Below are positions 7,877 through 22,751 of a stretch of DNA of 64,000 nt, piece by piece. This stretch comes from Basidiobolus meristosporus CBS 931.73. Its lineage: Eukaryota; Fungi; Basidiobolomycota. Both the position numbers and the translations under genes were made by a program. Position 1 is the stretch's first letter. Each line of letters starts with the position of its first letter. The DNA lies in NCBI GenBank assembly GCA_002104905.1, contig MCFE01000328.1, positions 1 through 64,000 on the forward strand, in the 5' to 3' direction. The notes below the pieces were generated by a model that worked only from the letters and a program-made list of their open reading frames with translations, searched no databases and was not told where the DNA came from.

Positions 7877-8850
7877 ATGACTGGATTCAGATCTATTGCT
7901 GTTGCTGGTGGCCTCGGGTATTTTGGCAGTGAGATCGTCCAAGCCTTGCTACAGCATGGATACACCCAAGTGAAGATCTTGTCTCGCAAGAACCAGGTTG
8001 GCGTCACAGCCATTCATCTCGGTGTTTGCATGGTTCTAATCTTTGATCTCCGATGTTACAGAATCACCCCAACCCCAATGTTCAAGTGGTGGCCATTGAC
8101 TACTCCAATGCCCAGACATTGGTGGAGGCACTGTCCGGGGTGGATGTGGTCATTAGTGCGCTGAATGACTATGCCATCTTGGAGCCTCAGCTGGCCCTTA
8201 TCGAAGCATCAAAGAGAGCTGGAGTCAAGCGCTTTGTGCCCTCGGAGTATGCTGTCGATTCTGCAGGGTAAGACAATCTAGGCCCATCTCCAATGTGATC
8301 ACTCTAATCCTCATGGGACTAACTTAGGAAAGGCAGTCCCATCTGGGAGGCTAGCCAGGCTCTAGTGAAGAGTCTCAAAGAGTCAGGACTACCATACACC
8401 ATCTATCAGAATGGTCTGTTCATGGAATACGTAACTTCTCCACCATTTGGCATCGACGTTACCACCGGGTCCTTCGCACTGTATGGCTCTGGGGACACCA
8501 AACTCGATATCACCAGTGCCAGGGATGTAGCCCGCTTCATCGCACACACTATCGGAGACAGCAAAAGTGAGAATCAAACCTACCATTTATCAGGGGACAG
8601 GCTCACCATGAACCAAATAGTCGGCGAGCTGGCTGAGGTGACCAAGACCACCCCAACCATCACTCGCTTGGAACACCCGGATCTCAAGCATCTGGAAGAC
8701 CCGGAAAGCGGAGAGTTCATCCACGAGCATCTGAAAATCGAGGTCGAGGATGGAGCGTTTGAGCACACCATCATATCCAAGGGTGGGCACGACGATTTCC
8801 AATTCCGCACTCTCCGCGAGTTCTTAACTGATCAAGTAGCTAGCAACTGA
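7877..8850 (+). CDS. NmrA-like / isoflavone reductase-like NAD(P)-binding protein, 282 aa
   Basis: Exons 7877-7996, 8062-8267, 8328-8850 with GT-AG introns that splice in frame. Rossmann motif IAVAGGLGYFG, plus VDVVISAL and VKRFVPSEY. Confidence 0.9.
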
Positions 8851-9649
8851 ATCTGAGTCTGTATCAACATCATCTATTCACAATAAACCTCACCATCCTT
8901 ACTCATTGTTCAGTCCAGGAAAGTACAATTCAACATTTGACTTGAATTCGGATGCTTTCAGCTAGTGTATTGGCCACTAAGAAATCGTGAAAGAAGTATA
9001 GGGATCCGAAGGGTAATGTCATTTTCAAGATTGGGTAAGCCATACAGTGGCATTTTTGCCATTCTAGATCACTAGTATTGATTGCTCAACCAAATCTGAT
9101 TCCAAATCTGACCAACAATTGACACATGAGTAGCCATAATTAGTCTGGTTAAACATAGCAGCTGAATAAACGAGTGTTGTATATTAGTTGACCCCACTCT
9201 ATATGTTCTGTAAGAGTTACTCCACCCAAAGTTTATTTAGTGTGAAGAGAATCGTATTGGCCTACTTCCCAAGAAACTAATGTATTCCATTCGGCTCACA
9301 AATAGATTTCGGTAGCGACAGAATTAGGTTGATCTGAATCGTTATGCCGTCCGTGGTTCACCTCATGATATTCCAAGACTCTTGTCAGTTCAATGTGCCA
9401 GTTTACCAGTGAGCGAGCTCGTGTTTCTGTCACATATAGGTATATCTATCTACTAAGCAAAGCATTCCAGGTTATTTCTGACCACGTGATGTGTACTTCA
9501 CTGGTTTGTCCGCTTGAGGTTTCTCCGCAACCGACATCAGGCTCTCTGGCCTTCGATGATCGGTCAAACCTTCATCATTTGTCAGCAGGTCTCATGGTTA
9601 AATAGACAAAGGAAGATGCCGAGTGATGCAGAACAATTGGAATCAAAGA

Positions 9650-10623
9650 ATGACTGGATACAAATCTATTGCCGTTGCTGGTGGTCTTGGAAGCTTTGGG
9701 AGCAAGATCGTACAGGCCTTGTTGGATCAGGGATATCCTCAAGTGAAGGTCCTAACACGTAAGAACCAGGTACGATTCAATACCCTTGTGTCCATTGTCA
9801 CATTCTTCCTCCCCTTTGCTCATTTAACATCAACAGAGCCACCCAAACCCGAATGTAACCGTAGTCGCCGTTGACTATGCGGATACCAAATCACTGATTA
9901 ACGCACTCACCGGGGTAGATGTGGTCATTAGCGCGTTGAATGATTATGCCACCTTAGGCCCTCAATTGGCACTCATCGAAGCCTCAAAAATCACTGGGGT
10001 CAAACGATTTGTGCCCTCGGAGTATGTAACCGATACTACAGAGTAAGAAAGCCTTGATGAGTTTATTCCGAGTCTTCGCTAAGCCCAGTTCTAAATCCAG
10101 AAAAAACGAACCCGTATGGGAACCAAGTAGGTCTCTGGTGAATAGTCTCAAAGAGTCCGGGCTGCCATACACCATTTATCAGAATGGCCTGTTCATGGAG
10201 TATGTGATGTCACCTATGTTTGGTATTGATGTTTCTACCGGGTCCATCACACTGTATGGCTCTGGTAACACCAAGGTTGATATCACTAGTGCCAAAGATG
10301 TGGCCCGCTTTATCGCATACACAATTGGTGACACCAAGAGCGAGAACAGGACTTACCACGTGGCAGGCGAAAGACTCACCATGAATGAAATCGTAAGCGA
10401 GCTAGTTGAAGTCACCAAAATCACTCCAGTCATCACCCGCCAGGAGCTGGCAGACCTGACGCATCTAGAAGATTACGAAAGTGAGGAATATATTCACGAG
10501 CACGCCCGCTTCGAGGCAGAAAACGGAGGCTTCAGACAGGCGGCGATCAGTAACAGTGAATACCCCGATTTCCGATTCCGCACATTCCATGAGTTCCTAC
10601 ATGACACTCCACTCGACAAGTAG
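9650..10623 (+). CDS. NmrA-like protein, divergent paralog, 282 aa
   Basis: Exons 9650-9769, 9837-10042, 10101-10623; same exon lengths (120/206/523) as its neighbours. IAVAGGLGSFG, VKRFVPSEY. Confidence 0.9.
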
Positions 10624-11265
10624 CTCAACTCTACTGCCATTTCCAAATCTACCCCATCCTTGCCACCAAGTCACATGATTGATGCCAATAAATGTTACAT
10701 TAATGCGTTTCCATTTGGTCACTTACTATGGTGGTACATGAAGTGAGGAATCACTTTCGTCTTATTTAAGGCTAGAGCCGTTCAACTGGTGACACTCCTA
10801 ATATATACGAAATCACTCATGTTGCTATTCTGTGTTGCTGGGTTCAATTAACAAACAGTCGTCATGAACATGGCCAACCAATATGATGAGCTTATTACAG
10901 GAGCGTTCCGCAGTACACTATGTGATGGATAAATGATGTGCAGCACTCCAACAATCATTCAAGTACTATGCTCAGAAGGTACACAGCATCCAAGGCCATC
11001 TAAGTGCTTACAATAAGTGCTGTGTGTGTACTTGTCATTTAGAAGTGTTAAGATTCAATCAATGATCGGATGACATAGGTAATCATCTAATGTACAGGTA
11101 CACTGCAAGTATTCACTAATTTGTCCGCCCGAGGTTTCTCCGCCACGAGTCTTACCCTCCCTGGCCTTCTAAGAACATCCACAATCCTCAGGATTTGTCA
11201 GCGAGGTCTGTGCTTATATACAGCCCGGAAGGTCCCCTCTTCTGCAGAACAATTGAGAACGAAAC

Positions 11266-12239
11266 ATGACTGGATTCAGATCTATTGCTGTTGCTGGCGG
11301 CCTCGGGTATTTTGGCAGTGAGATCGTCCAAGCCTTGCTACAGCATGGATACACCCAAGTGAAGATCTTGTCTCGCAAGAACCAGGTTGGCACCACAGCC
11401 ATTCATCTCGGTGTTTGCATGGTTCTAATCTTTGATCTCCGATGCTACAGAATCACCCCAACCCCAATGTTCAGGTGGTGGCCATTGACTACTCCAATGC
11501 CCAGACATTGGTGGAGGCACTGTCCGGGGTGGATGTGGTCATTAGTGCGCTGAATGACTATGCCATCTTGGAGCCTCAGCTGGCCCTTATCGAAGCATCA
11601 AAGAGAGCTGGAGTCAAGCGCTTTGTGCCCTCGGAGTATGCTGTTGATTCTGCAGGGTAAGACAATCTAGGCCCATCTCCAATGTGATCACTCTAATCCT
11701 CATGGGACTAACTTAGGAAAGGCAGTCCCATCTGGGAGGCTAGCCAGGCTCTAGTGAAGAGTCTCAAAGAGTCAGGACTACCATACACCATCTATCAGAA
11801 TGGTCTGTTCATGGAATACGTAACTTCTCCACCATTTGGCATCGACGTTACCACCGGGTCCTTCGCACTGTATGGCTCTGGGGACACCAAACTCGATATC
11901 ACCAGTGCCAGGGATGTAGCCCGCTTCATCGCACACACTATCGGAGACAGCAAAAGTGAGAATCAAACCTACCATTTATCAGGGGACAGGCTCACCATGA
12001 ACCAAATAGTCGGCGAGCTGGCTGAGGTGACCAAGACCACCCCAACCATCACTCGCTTGGAACACCCGGATCTCAAGCATCTGGAAGACCCGGAAAGCGG
12101 AGAGTTCATCCACGAGCATCTGAGAATCGAGGTCGAGGATGGAGCGTTTGAGCACACCATCATATCCAAGGGTGGGCACGACGATTTCCAATTCCGCACT
12201 CTCCGCGAGTTCTTAGCTGATCAAGTAGCTAGCAACTGA
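11266..12239 (+). CDS. NmrA-like protein, near-identical duplicate of 7877-8850
   Basis: Exons 11266-11385, 11451-11656, 11717-12239, offset 3389 bp from the 7877 copy; introns and about 150 bp of promoter are almost identical. Confidence 0.9.
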
Positions 12240-17500: not shown

Positions 17501-17768
17501 ATCGGTTAGCGGTGGACTACTATTTGCCAGGGAAAATGTGAAACCCCGTTCGCACCTGGAAACGATGTCTAGCGGAAAAAGAAAAGAAAAGTTTGGCTGG
17601 GCCGGAGATTGGATGAAGAATTTCGGGGAGTTCCTATTGGCGAGCCCATGAAATCCTCGCATTCAGGTCACAAACGATTGAATACATTTGGTGGATGAAT
17701 ATAGGTTTATTCAGTGGTTGACATCGATCTTATTACCAGCACGTATAACAATAATGCTACTCGATTGC

Positions 17769-17821: not shown

Positions 17822-19939
17822 CTAGTAACCGCCCTCATCATCATCATCGTCATCTATGTCCTTGGAGCTAGTGGAGTAGGTGGAGGTCTTGATTTCTGGC
17901 ATTTTCTCCCATGAGATACTGCCGTCACTACCACTCATGGCTCCACTGGAGCTGTAACTTGAATATGATCCTGATCCACCAGAAGATGTTGAGCTATATC
18001 CGGTCCCATATTCTTTGCTGCTAGAGCCTGAGCCTGAGCCTGAGCCTGAACCTGAGCTATATTCGGATACACTACCGCTATACCCTGAGCCGGAATTATA
18101 GTCGGAAGAAGATCCTTTGTAACCAGAGGATCCTGAGCTATATCCCGTCCCATACCCTTTGCTGCCTGAGCCAGAGCCATATTCGGATACACTACCGCTA
18201 TATCCTGAGCCGGAACTATAGTTGGAGGAAGATCCTTTGTAACCCGAGGAGCCGTATTCAGAACCCCCGCTCTTACCACCATAGCTACCACCGTAGGACG
18301 ACCCGCTAGAACCATACTTGCCATCCTTGGGTTGCTTCCTCTTGACAACAACCTTCTTGGTCTTATAGGTAGGAATTACAGTCACTTTCTTCTTACCATA
18401 GCTCGGAATGGTCTTCACCTTTCGATAAGTACCGCCCGATGGCTTGTATGTTGAAATAGGCTTCGTCTTGGGCTTGTAGACAGGCTTTGTCTTGGGCTTG
18501 TAGACAGGCTTTGTCTTGGGCTTGTAGACAGGCTTGGTCTTGGGCTTGTAGACAGGCTTGGTCTTGGGCTTGTAGACAGGCTTGGTCTTGGGCTTGTAGA
18601 CAGGCTTGGTCTTGGGCTTGTAGACAGGCTTGGTCTTGGGCTTGTAGACAGGCTTGGTCTTGGGCTTGTAGACAGGCTTGGTCTTGGGCTTGTAGACTGG
18701 CTTTGTCTTGGGCTTGTAGACTGGCTTCGTCTCGGGTTTGTAGACTGGCTTTGTCTTGGGCTTGTAGACTGGCTTTGTCTTGGGCTTGTAGACTGGCTTG
18801 GTCTTGGGCTTGTAGACTGGCTTTGTCTTGGGCTTGTATACTGGCTTCGTCTCGGGTTTGTAGACTGGCTTCGTCTCGGGTTTGTAGACTGGCTTAGGCC
18901 TGTACGTAGGCCAAGGTCTTGGCTTGTACGTTGGCTTGGGCTTAGGCTTGTACGTAGGTTTTGGCTTAGGCTTGTATGTGGGCTGTGGTCTTGGCTTGTA
19001 CGTCGGCTTGGGCTTAGGCTTGTATGTGGGCTGTGGTCTTGGCTTGTACGTCGGCTTAGGCTTAGGCTTGTACGTGGGCTGCGGACTAGGCTTATAGGTC
19101 GGCTTAGGCTTAGGCTTGTTCGTTGGGTAAGGCTTACCCTCACCATTCCATATGTTAATCCACCCAGTTCCGCGTATTCTAGAGCTACCTCTGCGATGGT
19201 AGCCTCCATATCCACCCAAACCAATATACGATTCATCCAGACCATAGACAGGGGTGATATAACTCACTGCACTAGGACGAAGGCGAACAATGCGGCTTCT
19301 ATAAACCGGCCTACTGATAAATATTCTGGGTCTCGGTCTCACACCGGTGATCAGAATTCGCTTCCCTGAGCCCTGCCCGCTACCAAAGCCGCTGTCTAAC
19401 GCTATACCATCCTCCACACCACCTACAACTCCGCCACCGAATCCTCCCACGCTAACACCTGATGCCAGCTCATCTATGGATCCCAGCCCTGAGTAAGGGA
19501 TGCTCATTTTCCCCGGGTGCTTGAACCCGGAGGCAAGCACATATGGTTGGCCATAAACGAACCCATTTCCTGCCAGCCCACTGAACGATTGGCCCATTAA
19601 AAGCGGAGCATCACCGGTCGCCACCGCACCTCCCCAACTGACACTCGCACCTTTGTGCATCGACTTCGAAACCCCATTCAACACATCCGTAAGATCCCCT
19701 AATTTCCCCTCGGTGATCTTGAATTTGGTACGATGATCCTTGCCATCCTGAAGAACCCACCTGATTTTCGAGGATTTCCCTTTGCTTCGAATGATACGTG
19801 GTTGGATCTTCGAGAAAGTTTTGTACCCTTTGTATGAGCTCTTCGTCACTTCACCGTCCTTTCCCTTCTCAGGTCGGACGGGTGACTCAGCCAGCACACA
19901 TGCAGTGGACAATGCCAGTAGTAATGCTGCGGATTTCAT
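17822..19939 (-). CDS. Secreted Pro/Lys/Tyr-rich repeat protein (extensin-like / adhesive-like), 705 aa
   Basis: Single ORF with signal peptide MKSAALLLALSTACVLA, Gly-rich N-region, 8 x YKPxPxPT, about 18 x YKP(K/E)TKPV, Gly/Ser/Tyr-rich C-region and poly-Asp tail. Confidence 0.88.
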   Translation of the reverse strand: MKSAALLLALSTACVLAESPVRPEKGKDGEVTKSSYKGYKTFSKIQPRIIRSKGKSSKIRWVLQDGKDHRTKFKITEGKLGDLTDVLNGVSKSMHKGASVSWGGAVATGDAPLLMGQSFSGLAGNGFVYGQPYVLASGFKHPGKMSIPYSGLGSIDELASGVSVGGFGGGVVGGVEDGIALDSGFGSGQGSGKRILITGVRPRPRIFISRPVYRSRIVRLRPSAVSYITPVYGLDESYIGLGGYGGYHRRGSSRIRGTGWINIWNGEGKPYPTNKPKPKPTYKPSPQPTYKPKPKPTYKPRPQPTYKPKPKPTYKPRPQPTYKPKPKPTYKPKPKPTYKPRPWPTYRPKPVYKPETKPVYKPETKPVYKPKTKPVYKPKTKPVYKPKTKPVYKPKTKPVYKPETKPVYKPKTKPVYKPKTKPVYKPKTKPVYKPKTKPVYKPKTKPVYKPKTKPVYKPKTKPVYKPKTKPVYKPKTKPVYKPKTKPVYKPKTKPISTYKPSGGTYRKVKTIPSYGKKKVTVIPTYKTKKVVVKRKQPKDGKYGSSGSSYGGSYGGKSGGSEYGSSGYKGSSSNYSSGSGYSGSVSEYGSGSGSKGYGTGYSSGSSGYKGSSSDYNSGSGYSGSVSEYSSGSGSGSGSGSSSKEYGTGYSSTSSGGSGSYSSYSSSGAMSGSDGSISWEKMPEIKTSTYSTSSKDIDDDDDDEGGY
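18460..19120. repeat. Coding 24-bp tandem array
   Basis: Unit ggcttgtagac(a/t)ggctt(t/g)gtcttg repeated about 18 times (18460-18893), adjoined by about 8 related 24-bp units. Confidence 0.95.
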
Positions 19940-20629
19940 GATGATAAGGTGGATGCGATTATTGAGGGGTTTCTACGAAAGTGAACCAAAATTTCGTATC
20001 ACAATCCCGTCAAATGGATTCTAAGGATGGTGAGGGGAAGGAAGGTTGGGATGAGGTGCGGTCCCCATGTGCAGAGCCGGCTCGTTTTATACTTCTCTGC
20101 CCACGGGTACCCATTCAACATTCATGTAACAGACCCGCAACAAGCATGCAGCAAGACAAAGGGATGAAACCATGTTATAAACTTTCCAACTTGTTTCTGA
20201 GTTTTTGGTGTCGTTCTGGTATGGTTCAATATCCTATTGCTTACGACAAGAGGTGGAGTGGAATCCCAAGGGGGGAGAAAGTTTGGTTTGCTTGTCAAGG
20301 ATCGGACCTGGTCATGTATCGCACGATACAGTGGCACATTGATCAGAAGCGTACATACTATATACAAATACGCCCTAATCACATCCGGTGGTTTGCATGA
20401 GTCGCATCTACACAGAAGCTTCTGTTGAAATGTTAATCGCAGTACTTTATAGACACCTCTACTTGAGGGAGCATTCTCGAGCTATTTTCGTTTACAGATC
20501 TCTGAGCTGATTTCTACCATAGAAGATCGCGTTGACATGTGCTTTTGACAAGTGCTGATAGACTGCTGCCTCTGATTAGCGTAATCAGGATTTATATTGT
20601 TGACGATATACGGAATGTTTCCCGTGTAT

Positions 20630-22751
20630 TTACTCTGGGTCTGACAATTCCTCCTCAAGCAGACTTCGATAAAACTGTACGACCTTAGGATGTGCCATCA
20701 CCTTTCGGCTGTCGAAGTTCAATACCTGCAGTCCCTCTAAACTGGTAGCCCTGCTAAGCGCCACATAAGCTTGTCCGTTCTCGAACACTCTGGACAAGTC
20801 AACTATCACCCGATCCAGTGTTTGCCCCTGCGCCTTATGGATCGACATTGCCCAGGCCAGCATCAGTGGCACCTAAACAATGAATCCATCATAGATTGTT
20901 ATGTTTTTAAGTGGGAGGATGGTTTGTACCCTTTGTAGCCTACCTGGGTTCTGCTAGCAACCTCGCCTAGCCCGGGTACTTCCATTTTCCAAGTTTCTGG
21001 TCGAACAGTGATGGTACAGCCAGTGAATCTCACAATAGGCATCCCAGTGTCTTCCTCGAACCCGACTACAACACCTAGGCTTCCATTAACCAATCGATAA
21101 TCTATATTTCTAATCAGTAACACTTGGGCGTGGAGTTTAAGCTCCAGCGTGCTTGGAGCCAGGGAATTCGCAGACAGTCGCTCCAGAAAGGGTGATTTGC
21201 CTTTATCGTTTGCCACATATCGATGTACATCTCCTGGTAGAGAATCAAGTTTTTGTGCGTTGGCTGCGTCCACCTCTCCCCGAAGTGAATATCTGCAAGG
21301 GGAGTTAGCCATTGATTCGCGCTGATGTCATAATCCCACTTACAATCGAGTAGGCTCAATTCCATCGTTAGGATATTGAGGGACCCGTGAAAGGGAGCGA
21401 AACACCAGCTCTGATTCTGGAGATAGAACCCCGATTCTCAACGAGTTCAGGATATCAATAAAGCCTAGATAGAGGTACAGATGTTAGCAGATAACGCATC
21501 ATGATAAACAGGTAATCCTACTCCACTCTGCTCTCGTTGTCGGAACACCTGCGTCAAGTGGACTGTACTTTGAATGCATGCCTTCCAGGTAGCTGCCTCG
21601 AAGCAGAAGAGGCCATCTTTACTAACCGGAGGTAATTGGAAAAAATCCCCGGTAACTACAAGCTACATCAAATTAATTCATGAGGGAGTGTTTGCTTGAT
21701 CGAGGGCTGGTTATATACCTGGATTCCTCCAAATGGCTTGTTGCACGCTCTCACTCTTCTGGCAATATATTCCAGTTTGTCGAAAAATTCCCCATCCAAC
21801 ATAGATACTAAAGTTTCCGGAAATTCATGCTCAGCCATATGCATACCAACTAGAGAGAGGGATAGCTAGCTTCGTTCAAAACGTACTTTCATCAATTACC
21901 AGCACTTTCACTTTCTGCCACCTCTTTTTTGATCTGCTTTGTTTCATGACCATTCTCAATAGTTGGTGTAGTTCGCCGGTTCCAAGCCCCACCCCGGCAA
22001 AGCTGTGCAATGTTGTTCCATTAAGATTGCAAGCGGCTATACCGGTGGAGGCGGTAACTGCCAGCTCCTCTCTTTTGTATATTTTGTGCATACGCTTTAT
22101 GAGCTCTTGTAGTAGCAAAGATTTTCCAGTGCCTAAATCGGTCGATGTCGCACACATTAACTGTCAAATGTACGTGCACGTATATCACACGGAGCACATA
22201 CCAGCTGATCCGGTAAAGAATAAACTACGCTTCTCGTCAATAGCCAAAGATAATGCTCGCTTTTGTTCGGAGGAGAAGTGAATTGACTTTGCCCTGAAAC
22301 GAGTGTCGTTATCAACAGACTCTTTTCTATTCGGGCTCGTTGCAGTCAACGATCGAGCTTTTCCTATACTTGAAATTGGCTCGTTGGTTTCTTTTGTGTT
22401 TCGTTTCTTATTCAAATTTTCTTCTTTGGACAATTTTTCAGCCTCGGTGGCCTGTTGTTCGAGGGGGTGTTCGACACTACACTGGTTTTCCAAAATACAA
22501 TCTCCAGGGCGCTTACTAATGGTGCTGCTCTCTTCACTGCTGGAAGACTTTCTTCTCAAAGTGGTATCAGTAACTAGGTCATCAGTTGGGCTGAAATATT
22601 TTGAAGTGACCTGCCCTTGAGTTGTCTCCTTGGAGCTGGTGGGAAAAGGCGTCAGGCTCTTTGGAAACGATTCAAGGAGTGCTCGCAAGGAGGTGCCTCT
22701 CGATTTGAAAGAAAGCGCACTATGGTTGGGCTTATTTGGTACAGAAGTCAT
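20630..22751 (-). CDS. PIF1: PIF1-family 5'-3' DNA helicase (5' end uncertain)
   Basis: Spliced motifs [89 protein letters not shown]. Introns are canonical except one weak GTGGAG donor. Confidence 0.9.

Follow-up and report, generated by a model that had tools for sequence, protein, structure and literature searches.

Known tyrosine-lysine-proline repeat proteins and the Basidiobolus gene

Short repeats rich in tyrosine, lysine and proline are known from bivalve foot proteins and from plant wall proteins. The repeat unit of the mussel foot protein Mfp-1 (or Mefp-1) is the decapeptide AKPSYPPTYK, and the unmodified recombinant protein coacervates through cation-pi contacts between Tyr and Lys, without 3,4-dihydroxyphenylalanine (DOPA). 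Apfp1, a foot protein of the pen shell (Atrina), contains the sequence KPVYKPK in its positive cluster, and in the soybean proline-rich proteins (PRPs) PRP1 and PRP2 the unit PPVYK alternates with PPVEK. For fungi, how surface glues are built and what they do was considered an open question in a 2018 review. Apart from a few ascomycete yeasts, little is known of the molecules that give fungal spores their stickiness. The capilliconidia of the Basidiobolaceae have a beak tip covered with adhesive material, and the adhesive-tipped spores of Basidiobolus hitch onto arthropods and then survive passage through the gut. Here we describe a gene of Basidiobolus meristosporus CBS 931.73 that encodes a protein of 705 amino acids with two arrays of Tyr-Lys-Pro octapeptides, a candidate for a surface coat or adhesive. 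The DNA analyzed, hereafter the window, is a stretch of 64 kb corresponding to positions 1 to 64,000 of contig MCFE01000328.1 (assembly GCA_002104905.1), and window coordinates are therefore those of the contig.

The gene spans positions 17822-19939 on the minus strand, and fits exactly the stretch that had been singled out in a preliminary description of the sequence. It is a genuine gene, consisting of an uninterrupted open reading frame (ORF) that starts with ATG, ends with TAG and has 705 codons, and the public annotation of the contig contains the same ORF as a single-exon gene model of 705 amino acids. No other ORF in the window is longer. When the window was shuffled (30 shuffles), the longest ORF had a mean length of 141 amino acids and a maximum of 217.

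The features read in the preliminary description were all recovered. The protein starts with a signal-peptide-like sequence of 17 residues that holds its sole hydrophobic 15-mer (the top six 15-residue hydropathy windows all fall within residues 1-21), and export by means of this start is predicted. A regular expression for YKP.P.PT yields exactly the eight units claimed, at residues 282-345 (array A). The second array (array B), described as having about 18 units, contains 17 matches to YKP[KE]TKPV, at residues 352-487, plus one YKPKTKPI variant. Six residues, YRPKPV, bridge both arrays. The Gly/Ser/Tyr block is indeed duplicated internally, a 40-residue unit at residue 565 being found again at residue 605 with insertions of eight and four residues, and the poly-Asp tail includes the run DDDDDD and ends with EGGY. 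Three further elements had escaped attention: the region comprising residues 18-272, whose 255 residues account for 36% of the protein; a linker rich in Lys (residues 508-545); and two Lys-Arg (KR) dipeptides, at residues 193-194 and 533-534, which coincide with block borders.

The predicted mature chain (74.5 kDa) is strongly cationic, as had been proposed, with an isoelectric point (pI) of 10.1 and a net charge of +97; it has no Cys. Most of the charge is contributed by the 235 residues of the arrays (net +75), which are composed of 31% Lys, 28% Pro, 12% Tyr and 13% Thr. Tyr is invariant in all 27 units and follows the preceding Tyr at a distance of exactly eight residues at 25 of the 28 intervals. 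A hydropathy scan of the whole protein revealed neither a membrane stretch beyond the signal-peptide-like start nor a glycosylphosphatidylinositol (GPI) attachment signal, the last 30 residues being acidic and polar. The ESM Atlas model of the whole protein has a predicted local distance difference test score (pLDDT) of 0.36, and AlphaFold2 run without an alignment on residues 1-275 gave a pLDDT of 30.7, with no residue above 50. Low pLDDT throughout is consistent with a disordered protein, with the proviso that single-sequence models of orphan proteins are often poor and that low values are no proof of disorder.

Like Mefp-1/Mfp-1 and Apfp1, the Basidiobolus protein is a tandem-repeat polycation with abundant Lys, Pro, Tyr and Thr, and it is predicted to be secreted, as they are. 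The tetrapeptide PTYK of Mfp-1 occurs in it nine times, and its Tyr residues have Lys as a neighbour, the feature to which unmodified recombinant Mfp-1 owes its cation-pi coacervation. The heptapeptide KPVYKPK is common to Apfp1. In contrast to Mfp-1, the unit is an octapeptide (24 bp) and not a decapeptide, and units of the AKPSYPPTYK type do not occur. Neither bivalve protein matches the absence of Pro-Pro, the fungal origin of the gene, the additional N-terminal region, the Gly/Ser/Tyr block or the poly-Asp tail. Searches with the arrays and with the N- and C-terminal regions showed no homology to bivalve foot proteins outside low-complexity matches.

Plant PRPs are likewise basic, lack Cys and have a signal peptide (predicted in our case). 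The pentapeptide KPVYK, with 18 copies in the Basidiobolus protein, is comparable to PPVYK, and the alternation of Lys and Glu in YKPKTKPV and YKPETKPV parallels that of PPVYK and PPVEK. PRPs are insolubilized in the plant wall. Unlike them, the fungal protein has Lys-Pro in place of Pro-hydroxyproline (Pro-Hyp), contains neither PPVYK nor Pro-Pro and shows no homology; moreover, it belongs to another kingdom. Extensins, Ser-Hyp4 glycoproteins thought to cross-link through Tyr, are similar in being secreted (a prediction here), basic and rich in Pro, Tyr and Lys, with rod-like repeats, and different in that SPPP, Pro-Pro, Y-x-Y and Tyr-Tyr are all absent from the protein studied here. The resemblance to Mefp-1, PRPs and extensins put forward in the preliminary description is thus partial: it stands for KPVYK and PTYK, and fails for the proline-rich and tyrosine motifs and the decapeptide. 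The protein may act in the same manner as they do, but it belongs to none of these families, and the likeness is best read as convergence.

Other structural and adhesive proteins were also considered. Materials rich in Gly, Ser and Tyr include the FUS-type [G/S]Y[G/S] domains, the glycine-rich wall proteins of plants, the eggshell precursors of schistosomes and the cement of the sandcastle worm. The Gly/Ser/Tyr block, in which 17 of 125 residues are Tyr and where most of the 11 [GS]Y[GS] triplets of the protein lie, resembles them in composition only. The combination of a polycationic block with a Ser-rich acidic part recalls in addition the oppositely charged proteins of sandcastle-worm cement. 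With the fungal adhesins Als, Flo, Epa and Hwp1 the protein shares a signal peptide, Thr/Ser-bearing tandem repeats, near-identical DNA units and a copy number that is likely to be variable. Unlike these adhesins, it has no N-terminal ligand-binding domain recognized by Pfam and no GPI signal, and its repeats are strongly basic and Tyr-rich instead of Ser/Thr mucin-like. The repeat of PIR wall proteins, Q[IV]xDGQ[IVP]Q, has no match in the protein, and the eight-cysteine pattern of hydrophobins and CFEM proteins is ruled out by the lack of Cys in the mature chain. A signal peptide, near-identical repeats, a composition biased towards cross-linkable residues and disorder, secretion and disorder being predictions, place the protein among the secreted tandem-repeat structural or adhesive proteins, which are a functional class and not a homology family. 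We know of no protein of this class described in the fungal lineage of Basidiobolus.

Search for relatives and evolution of the repeats

A homology search with the non-repeat N-terminus had been put forward in the preliminary description as a check. No relative was obtained: residues 18-272 had no match in a word-index search, nor any match at E ≤ 0.001 in an exhaustive phmmer search of 1.84 billion representatives. Peptides of this region were also back-translated and compared with metagenomes, where 253 stretches matched and none was confirmed. The C-terminal 198 residues (508-705) had no match in the word index. For the whole protein, Pfam returned only a sub-threshold match to the PT repeat (13.8 bits, with a cut-off of 26.2). 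For the N-terminal region, a search of PDB sequences gave nothing below an E value of 0.29. ESM Atlas feature searches with both halves of the protein gave no usable match, and the structure rows from the same source were discarded, as all of them had template modelling (TM) scores below 0.4 and the query model was the one of pLDDT 0.36. A degenerate DNA pattern for YKPKTKPVYKP did not match the metagenome collection, tblastn detected no paralogue in the 64-kb window, and the only find of a literature search with the motif strings was the Apfp1 cluster.

These results have to be read taking into account that an exact-sequence look-up failed to find the 705-residue protein itself in the 15-billion-protein collection, which weakens every negative homology result; blank protein searches for the B. 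meristosporus genome may understate the relatives that exist. The protein is present in the ESM Atlas and in the gene-position index. By orphan we mean without a relative in the collections searched (protein representatives, Pfam, PDB, ESM Atlas and metagenomes), and in that sense the gene appears to be lineage-specific. As no homologue was found in the Pfam, word-index, phmmer and metagenome searches, an independent origin of the Tyr-Lys-Pro repeats, already suggested in the preliminary description, fits the data.

Only the arrays gave matches in the word index, 32 in total. They were rejected as homologues, being K/P/T linkers of unrelated proteins such as fish PCOLCE (procollagen C-endopeptidase enhancers) and bacterial transglutaminase-FN3 proteins; bivalve proteins were not among the 32. 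In 30 of these matches the K/P-rich segment, an inter-domain linker, has about 5% Tyr or less, mostly 0-2%, versus 11.5% in the arrays, and for this reason we do not consider the array an ordinary linker.

One match, P0028 (JGI metagenome 3300078831, L002:3001-4875), was likewise rejected as a homologue: it shares PTYKP repeats and poly-Asp runs with the Basidiobolus protein, and the similarity ends at the repeats. It is 624 amino acids long, has a start similar to a signal peptide and includes, besides several runs of Asp, 197 residues of PTYKP/PTYE repeats with 15.7% Tyr. Its sequence suggests a second Tyr-Lys-Pro repeat protein of independent origin.

The DNA of the arrays was then considered. 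Tandem Repeats Finder describes array A as 4.8 copies of a 48-bp unit, that is, a super-unit of 16 residues (YKPKPKPT-YKPRPQPT), and array B as 18.2 copies of a 24-bp unit with 95% matches and a score of 694. Array B is made of two sub-blocks, units with CCA-GTC being followed by units with CCT-GTC. These sub-blocks and the near identity of the units point to a very recent expansion by unequal exchange, and the number of copies probably differs between strains. Arrays with 95% identity can also be shortened artificially when a genome is assembled. Among the 17 core units of array B only five nucleotide positions vary; four of them are synonymous third positions and the remaining one corresponds to the Lys/Glu switch. 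The two copies of the Gly/Ser/Tyr unit differ by seven synonymous and four non-synonymous codons. Although the numbers are small, this synonymous bias among repeat copies is the pattern expected from selection on the 705-residue frame. Other frames of the arrays contain ORFs of 276 amino acids (18415-19245, minus strand) and 136 amino acids (18487-18897, plus strand). Because only in the frame of 705 residues are the differences among units synonymous, we regard them as by-products of the 24-bp periodicity and not as genes.

Possible roles of the protein

The explanation that we favor, to which we assign a probability of about one half, is that the gene encodes an extracellular material protein, either of a coat or of an adhesive: an exported, disordered, block-built polycation studded with Tyr. 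According to it, the protein would leave the cell by the secretory pathway, many of its Thr and Ser residues being probably O-mannosylated. Outside the cell, the polycationic rod, stiffened by Pro, would adsorb to negatively charged surfaces such as the polymers of the own wall, cuticle or gut debris. Cohesion would result from the regularly spaced Tyr residues beside Lys by means of cation-pi contacts, as in unmodified recombinant Mfp-1, and under the action of a suitable secreted enzyme (tyrosinase, laccase or peroxidase) these Tyr residues could also form covalent DOPA-quinone, Lys or dityrosine cross-links. The Gly/Ser/Tyr block would add self-association, and the acidic tail may mask charge in transit. 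This would leave spores or hyphae covered by an insoluble layer, either a surface coat or an adhesive matrix. We think that a coat or adhesive of the spore surface is the most likely site of action; the sequence does not separate a glue from a structural protein of the wall or spore coat.

Several points weigh against this explanation. No orthologue was found in the collections searched. Function can therefore not be argued from conservation, as is usually done, and a repeat gene that is a young orphan may be neutral. The signal peptide was called by eye and from hydropathy, not by a trained predictor. Hydroxylation of proline is doubtful because the protein has no Pro-Pro dipeptide. Insect epicuticle is waxy and thus no obvious fit for a polycation. 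Finally, a coat or adhesive model leaves the 255-residue N-terminal region unexplained.

A stricter version, which we consider unlikely, identifies the protein with the adhesive of the haptor, the capilliconidial tip; the beak would store and release it, and oxidation would cure it. The preliminary description had anticipated a fungus with sticky conidia, and the Basidiobolaceae do make adhesive-tipped capilliconidia. The motifs resembling those of bivalve foot proteins and the high content of Lys and Tyr, together with the lack of a wall-anchoring signal, would suit such a glue. Nothing, however, ties the gene to the capilliconidial cell type, and the fungal glues studied so far are largely based on glycoproteins or glycans. 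Furthermore, this version needs orthologues in other species that form capilliconidia, whereas the gene is a single-copy orphan with none seen in the collections searched.

It is rather improbable that the arrays are a stiff, protease-resistant spacer spanning the wall, comparable to TonB and to the PT/KP linkers of bacteria, in which Tyr would be chemically idle and which would serve to present or anchor either the N-terminal region or the Gly/Ser/Tyr block. Inter-domain K/P/T linkers of unrelated proteins are the best database matches to the arrays, and Lys or Arg directly precedes Pro at 24 of 24 positions in array A and at 36 of 51 in array B, as suits a protease-resistant rod. Lys-Pro bonds would withstand proteases of the trypsin type, which is noteworthy in a fungus whose life includes gut passage. 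The matched linkers are, nevertheless, nearly devoid of Tyr, which is present here in 27 of 27 units, and neither Pfam nor the PDB search nor the models recognize a folded domain at either end that could be displayed.

We attach a similarly low probability to the gene being a young, fast-evolving repeat ORF, functionless or unexpressed, that has been annotated only because the repeats hold the frame open. The lack of relatives in the collections searched, the very recent expansion reflected in DNA units that are 95% identical and the long ORFs of 276 and 136 amino acids in other frames of the arrays are what such an origin would predict. Against it, the 470 codons that lie outside the repeats are open as well, a proper signal peptide is predicted at the first ATG, repeat copies differ mostly by synonymous changes in the frame of 705 residues, and the maximum obtained by shuffling is only 217 amino acids.

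Cleavage by a Kex2-type protease at dibasic sites into separate products, one of them a Lys/Pro-rich polycation with, for instance, antibacterial activity in the gut, appears very improbable. The two KR dipeptides lie exactly on block borders and would delimit pieces of pI 9.7, 10.5 and 4.5, but two KR among 136 Lys and Arg residues can easily occur by chance, the repeated spacer-KR pattern of true polyprotein precursors is missing, and a piece of 340 residues is far above the size of known Pro-rich antimicrobial peptides. It is hardly to be expected that the protein forms a two-part wet adhesive on the capilliconidial beak, by which an early-diverging fungus would have arrived independently at the strategy of mussels and sandcastle worms. 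In this scheme, cleavage at KR would yield a polycation of 40 kDa (pI 10.5, net +94, Tyr at intervals of eight) and a Ser/Gly/Tyr polyanion-to-be of 17 kDa, whose pI of 4.5 would be lower still if Ser is phosphorylated; the two would coacervate and then be cured by a secreted tyrosinase.

The protein is therefore presented as a plausible candidate rather than as a demonstrated adhesive system. If it is convergent on the Tyr-Lys-Pro chemistry of the mussel byssus and the plant wall, it represents a concrete and testable candidate for a spore glue or for a tanned spore coat, and a coat or adhesive function, if true, would make its sequence a new template for bio-inspired adhesives. Should the gene be an orphan that is not expressed, it would only add to the number of low-complexity ORFs and be of little consequence. 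Basidiobolus is culturable and is occasionally a human pathogen.

Features of the gene and its surroundings

The blocks of the protein and the consensus motifs that flank the gene are listed in Table 1.

Table 1. Coordinates in the window of the protein blocks and of flanking motifs
Feature	Position	Strand	Description
TATAAA, possible TATA box	20086..20091	-	152 nt upstream of the ATG; consensus match only
Signal-peptide-like start, residues 1-17	19889..19939	-	Met-Lys, Ala/Leu-rich core, V-L-A before Glu18; predicted cleavage
Non-repeat Gly-rich basic region, residues 18-272	19124..19888	-	47 Gly, net +19; KR at 193-194, RR at 249-250
Array A, residues 273-351	18887..19123	-	Lead-in, 8 x YKPxPxPT, YRPKPV junction
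Array B, residues 352-495	18455..18886	-	17 x YKP(K/E)TKPV and one YKPKTKPI
Decayed repeats and Lys-rich linker, residues 496-545	18305..18454	-	KR at 533-534
Gly/Ser/Tyr block, residues 546-670	17930..18304	-	37 Gly, 55 Ser+Thr, 17 Tyr, net charge 0
Acidic tail, residues 671-705, and stop	17822..17929	-	Net -8, DDDDDD, end EGGY
AATAAA, possible polyadenylation signal	17706..17711	-	111 nt past the stop; consensus match only

Directly upstream of the gene, positions 20630-21312 (minus strand) contain two short ORFs, of 80 and 137 amino acids, resembling the C-terminal/2B part of Pif1-type helicases. By its sequence, this pair looks like a truncated or broken PIF1-like gene, possibly derived from a Helitron. 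Farther away, at about 7877-12239 on the plus strand, there is a row of three paralogues of the NmrA-like (NAD-binding) type, with 282, 290 and 282 amino acids, which adjoins a gene for dihydroorotate dehydrogenase. Spliced genes are also present among the neighbours, such as that of an E2 ubiquitin-conjugating enzyme. The G+C content drops across the window, from about 0.45-0.51 to 0.38-0.41 in its right-hand part (38000-64000).

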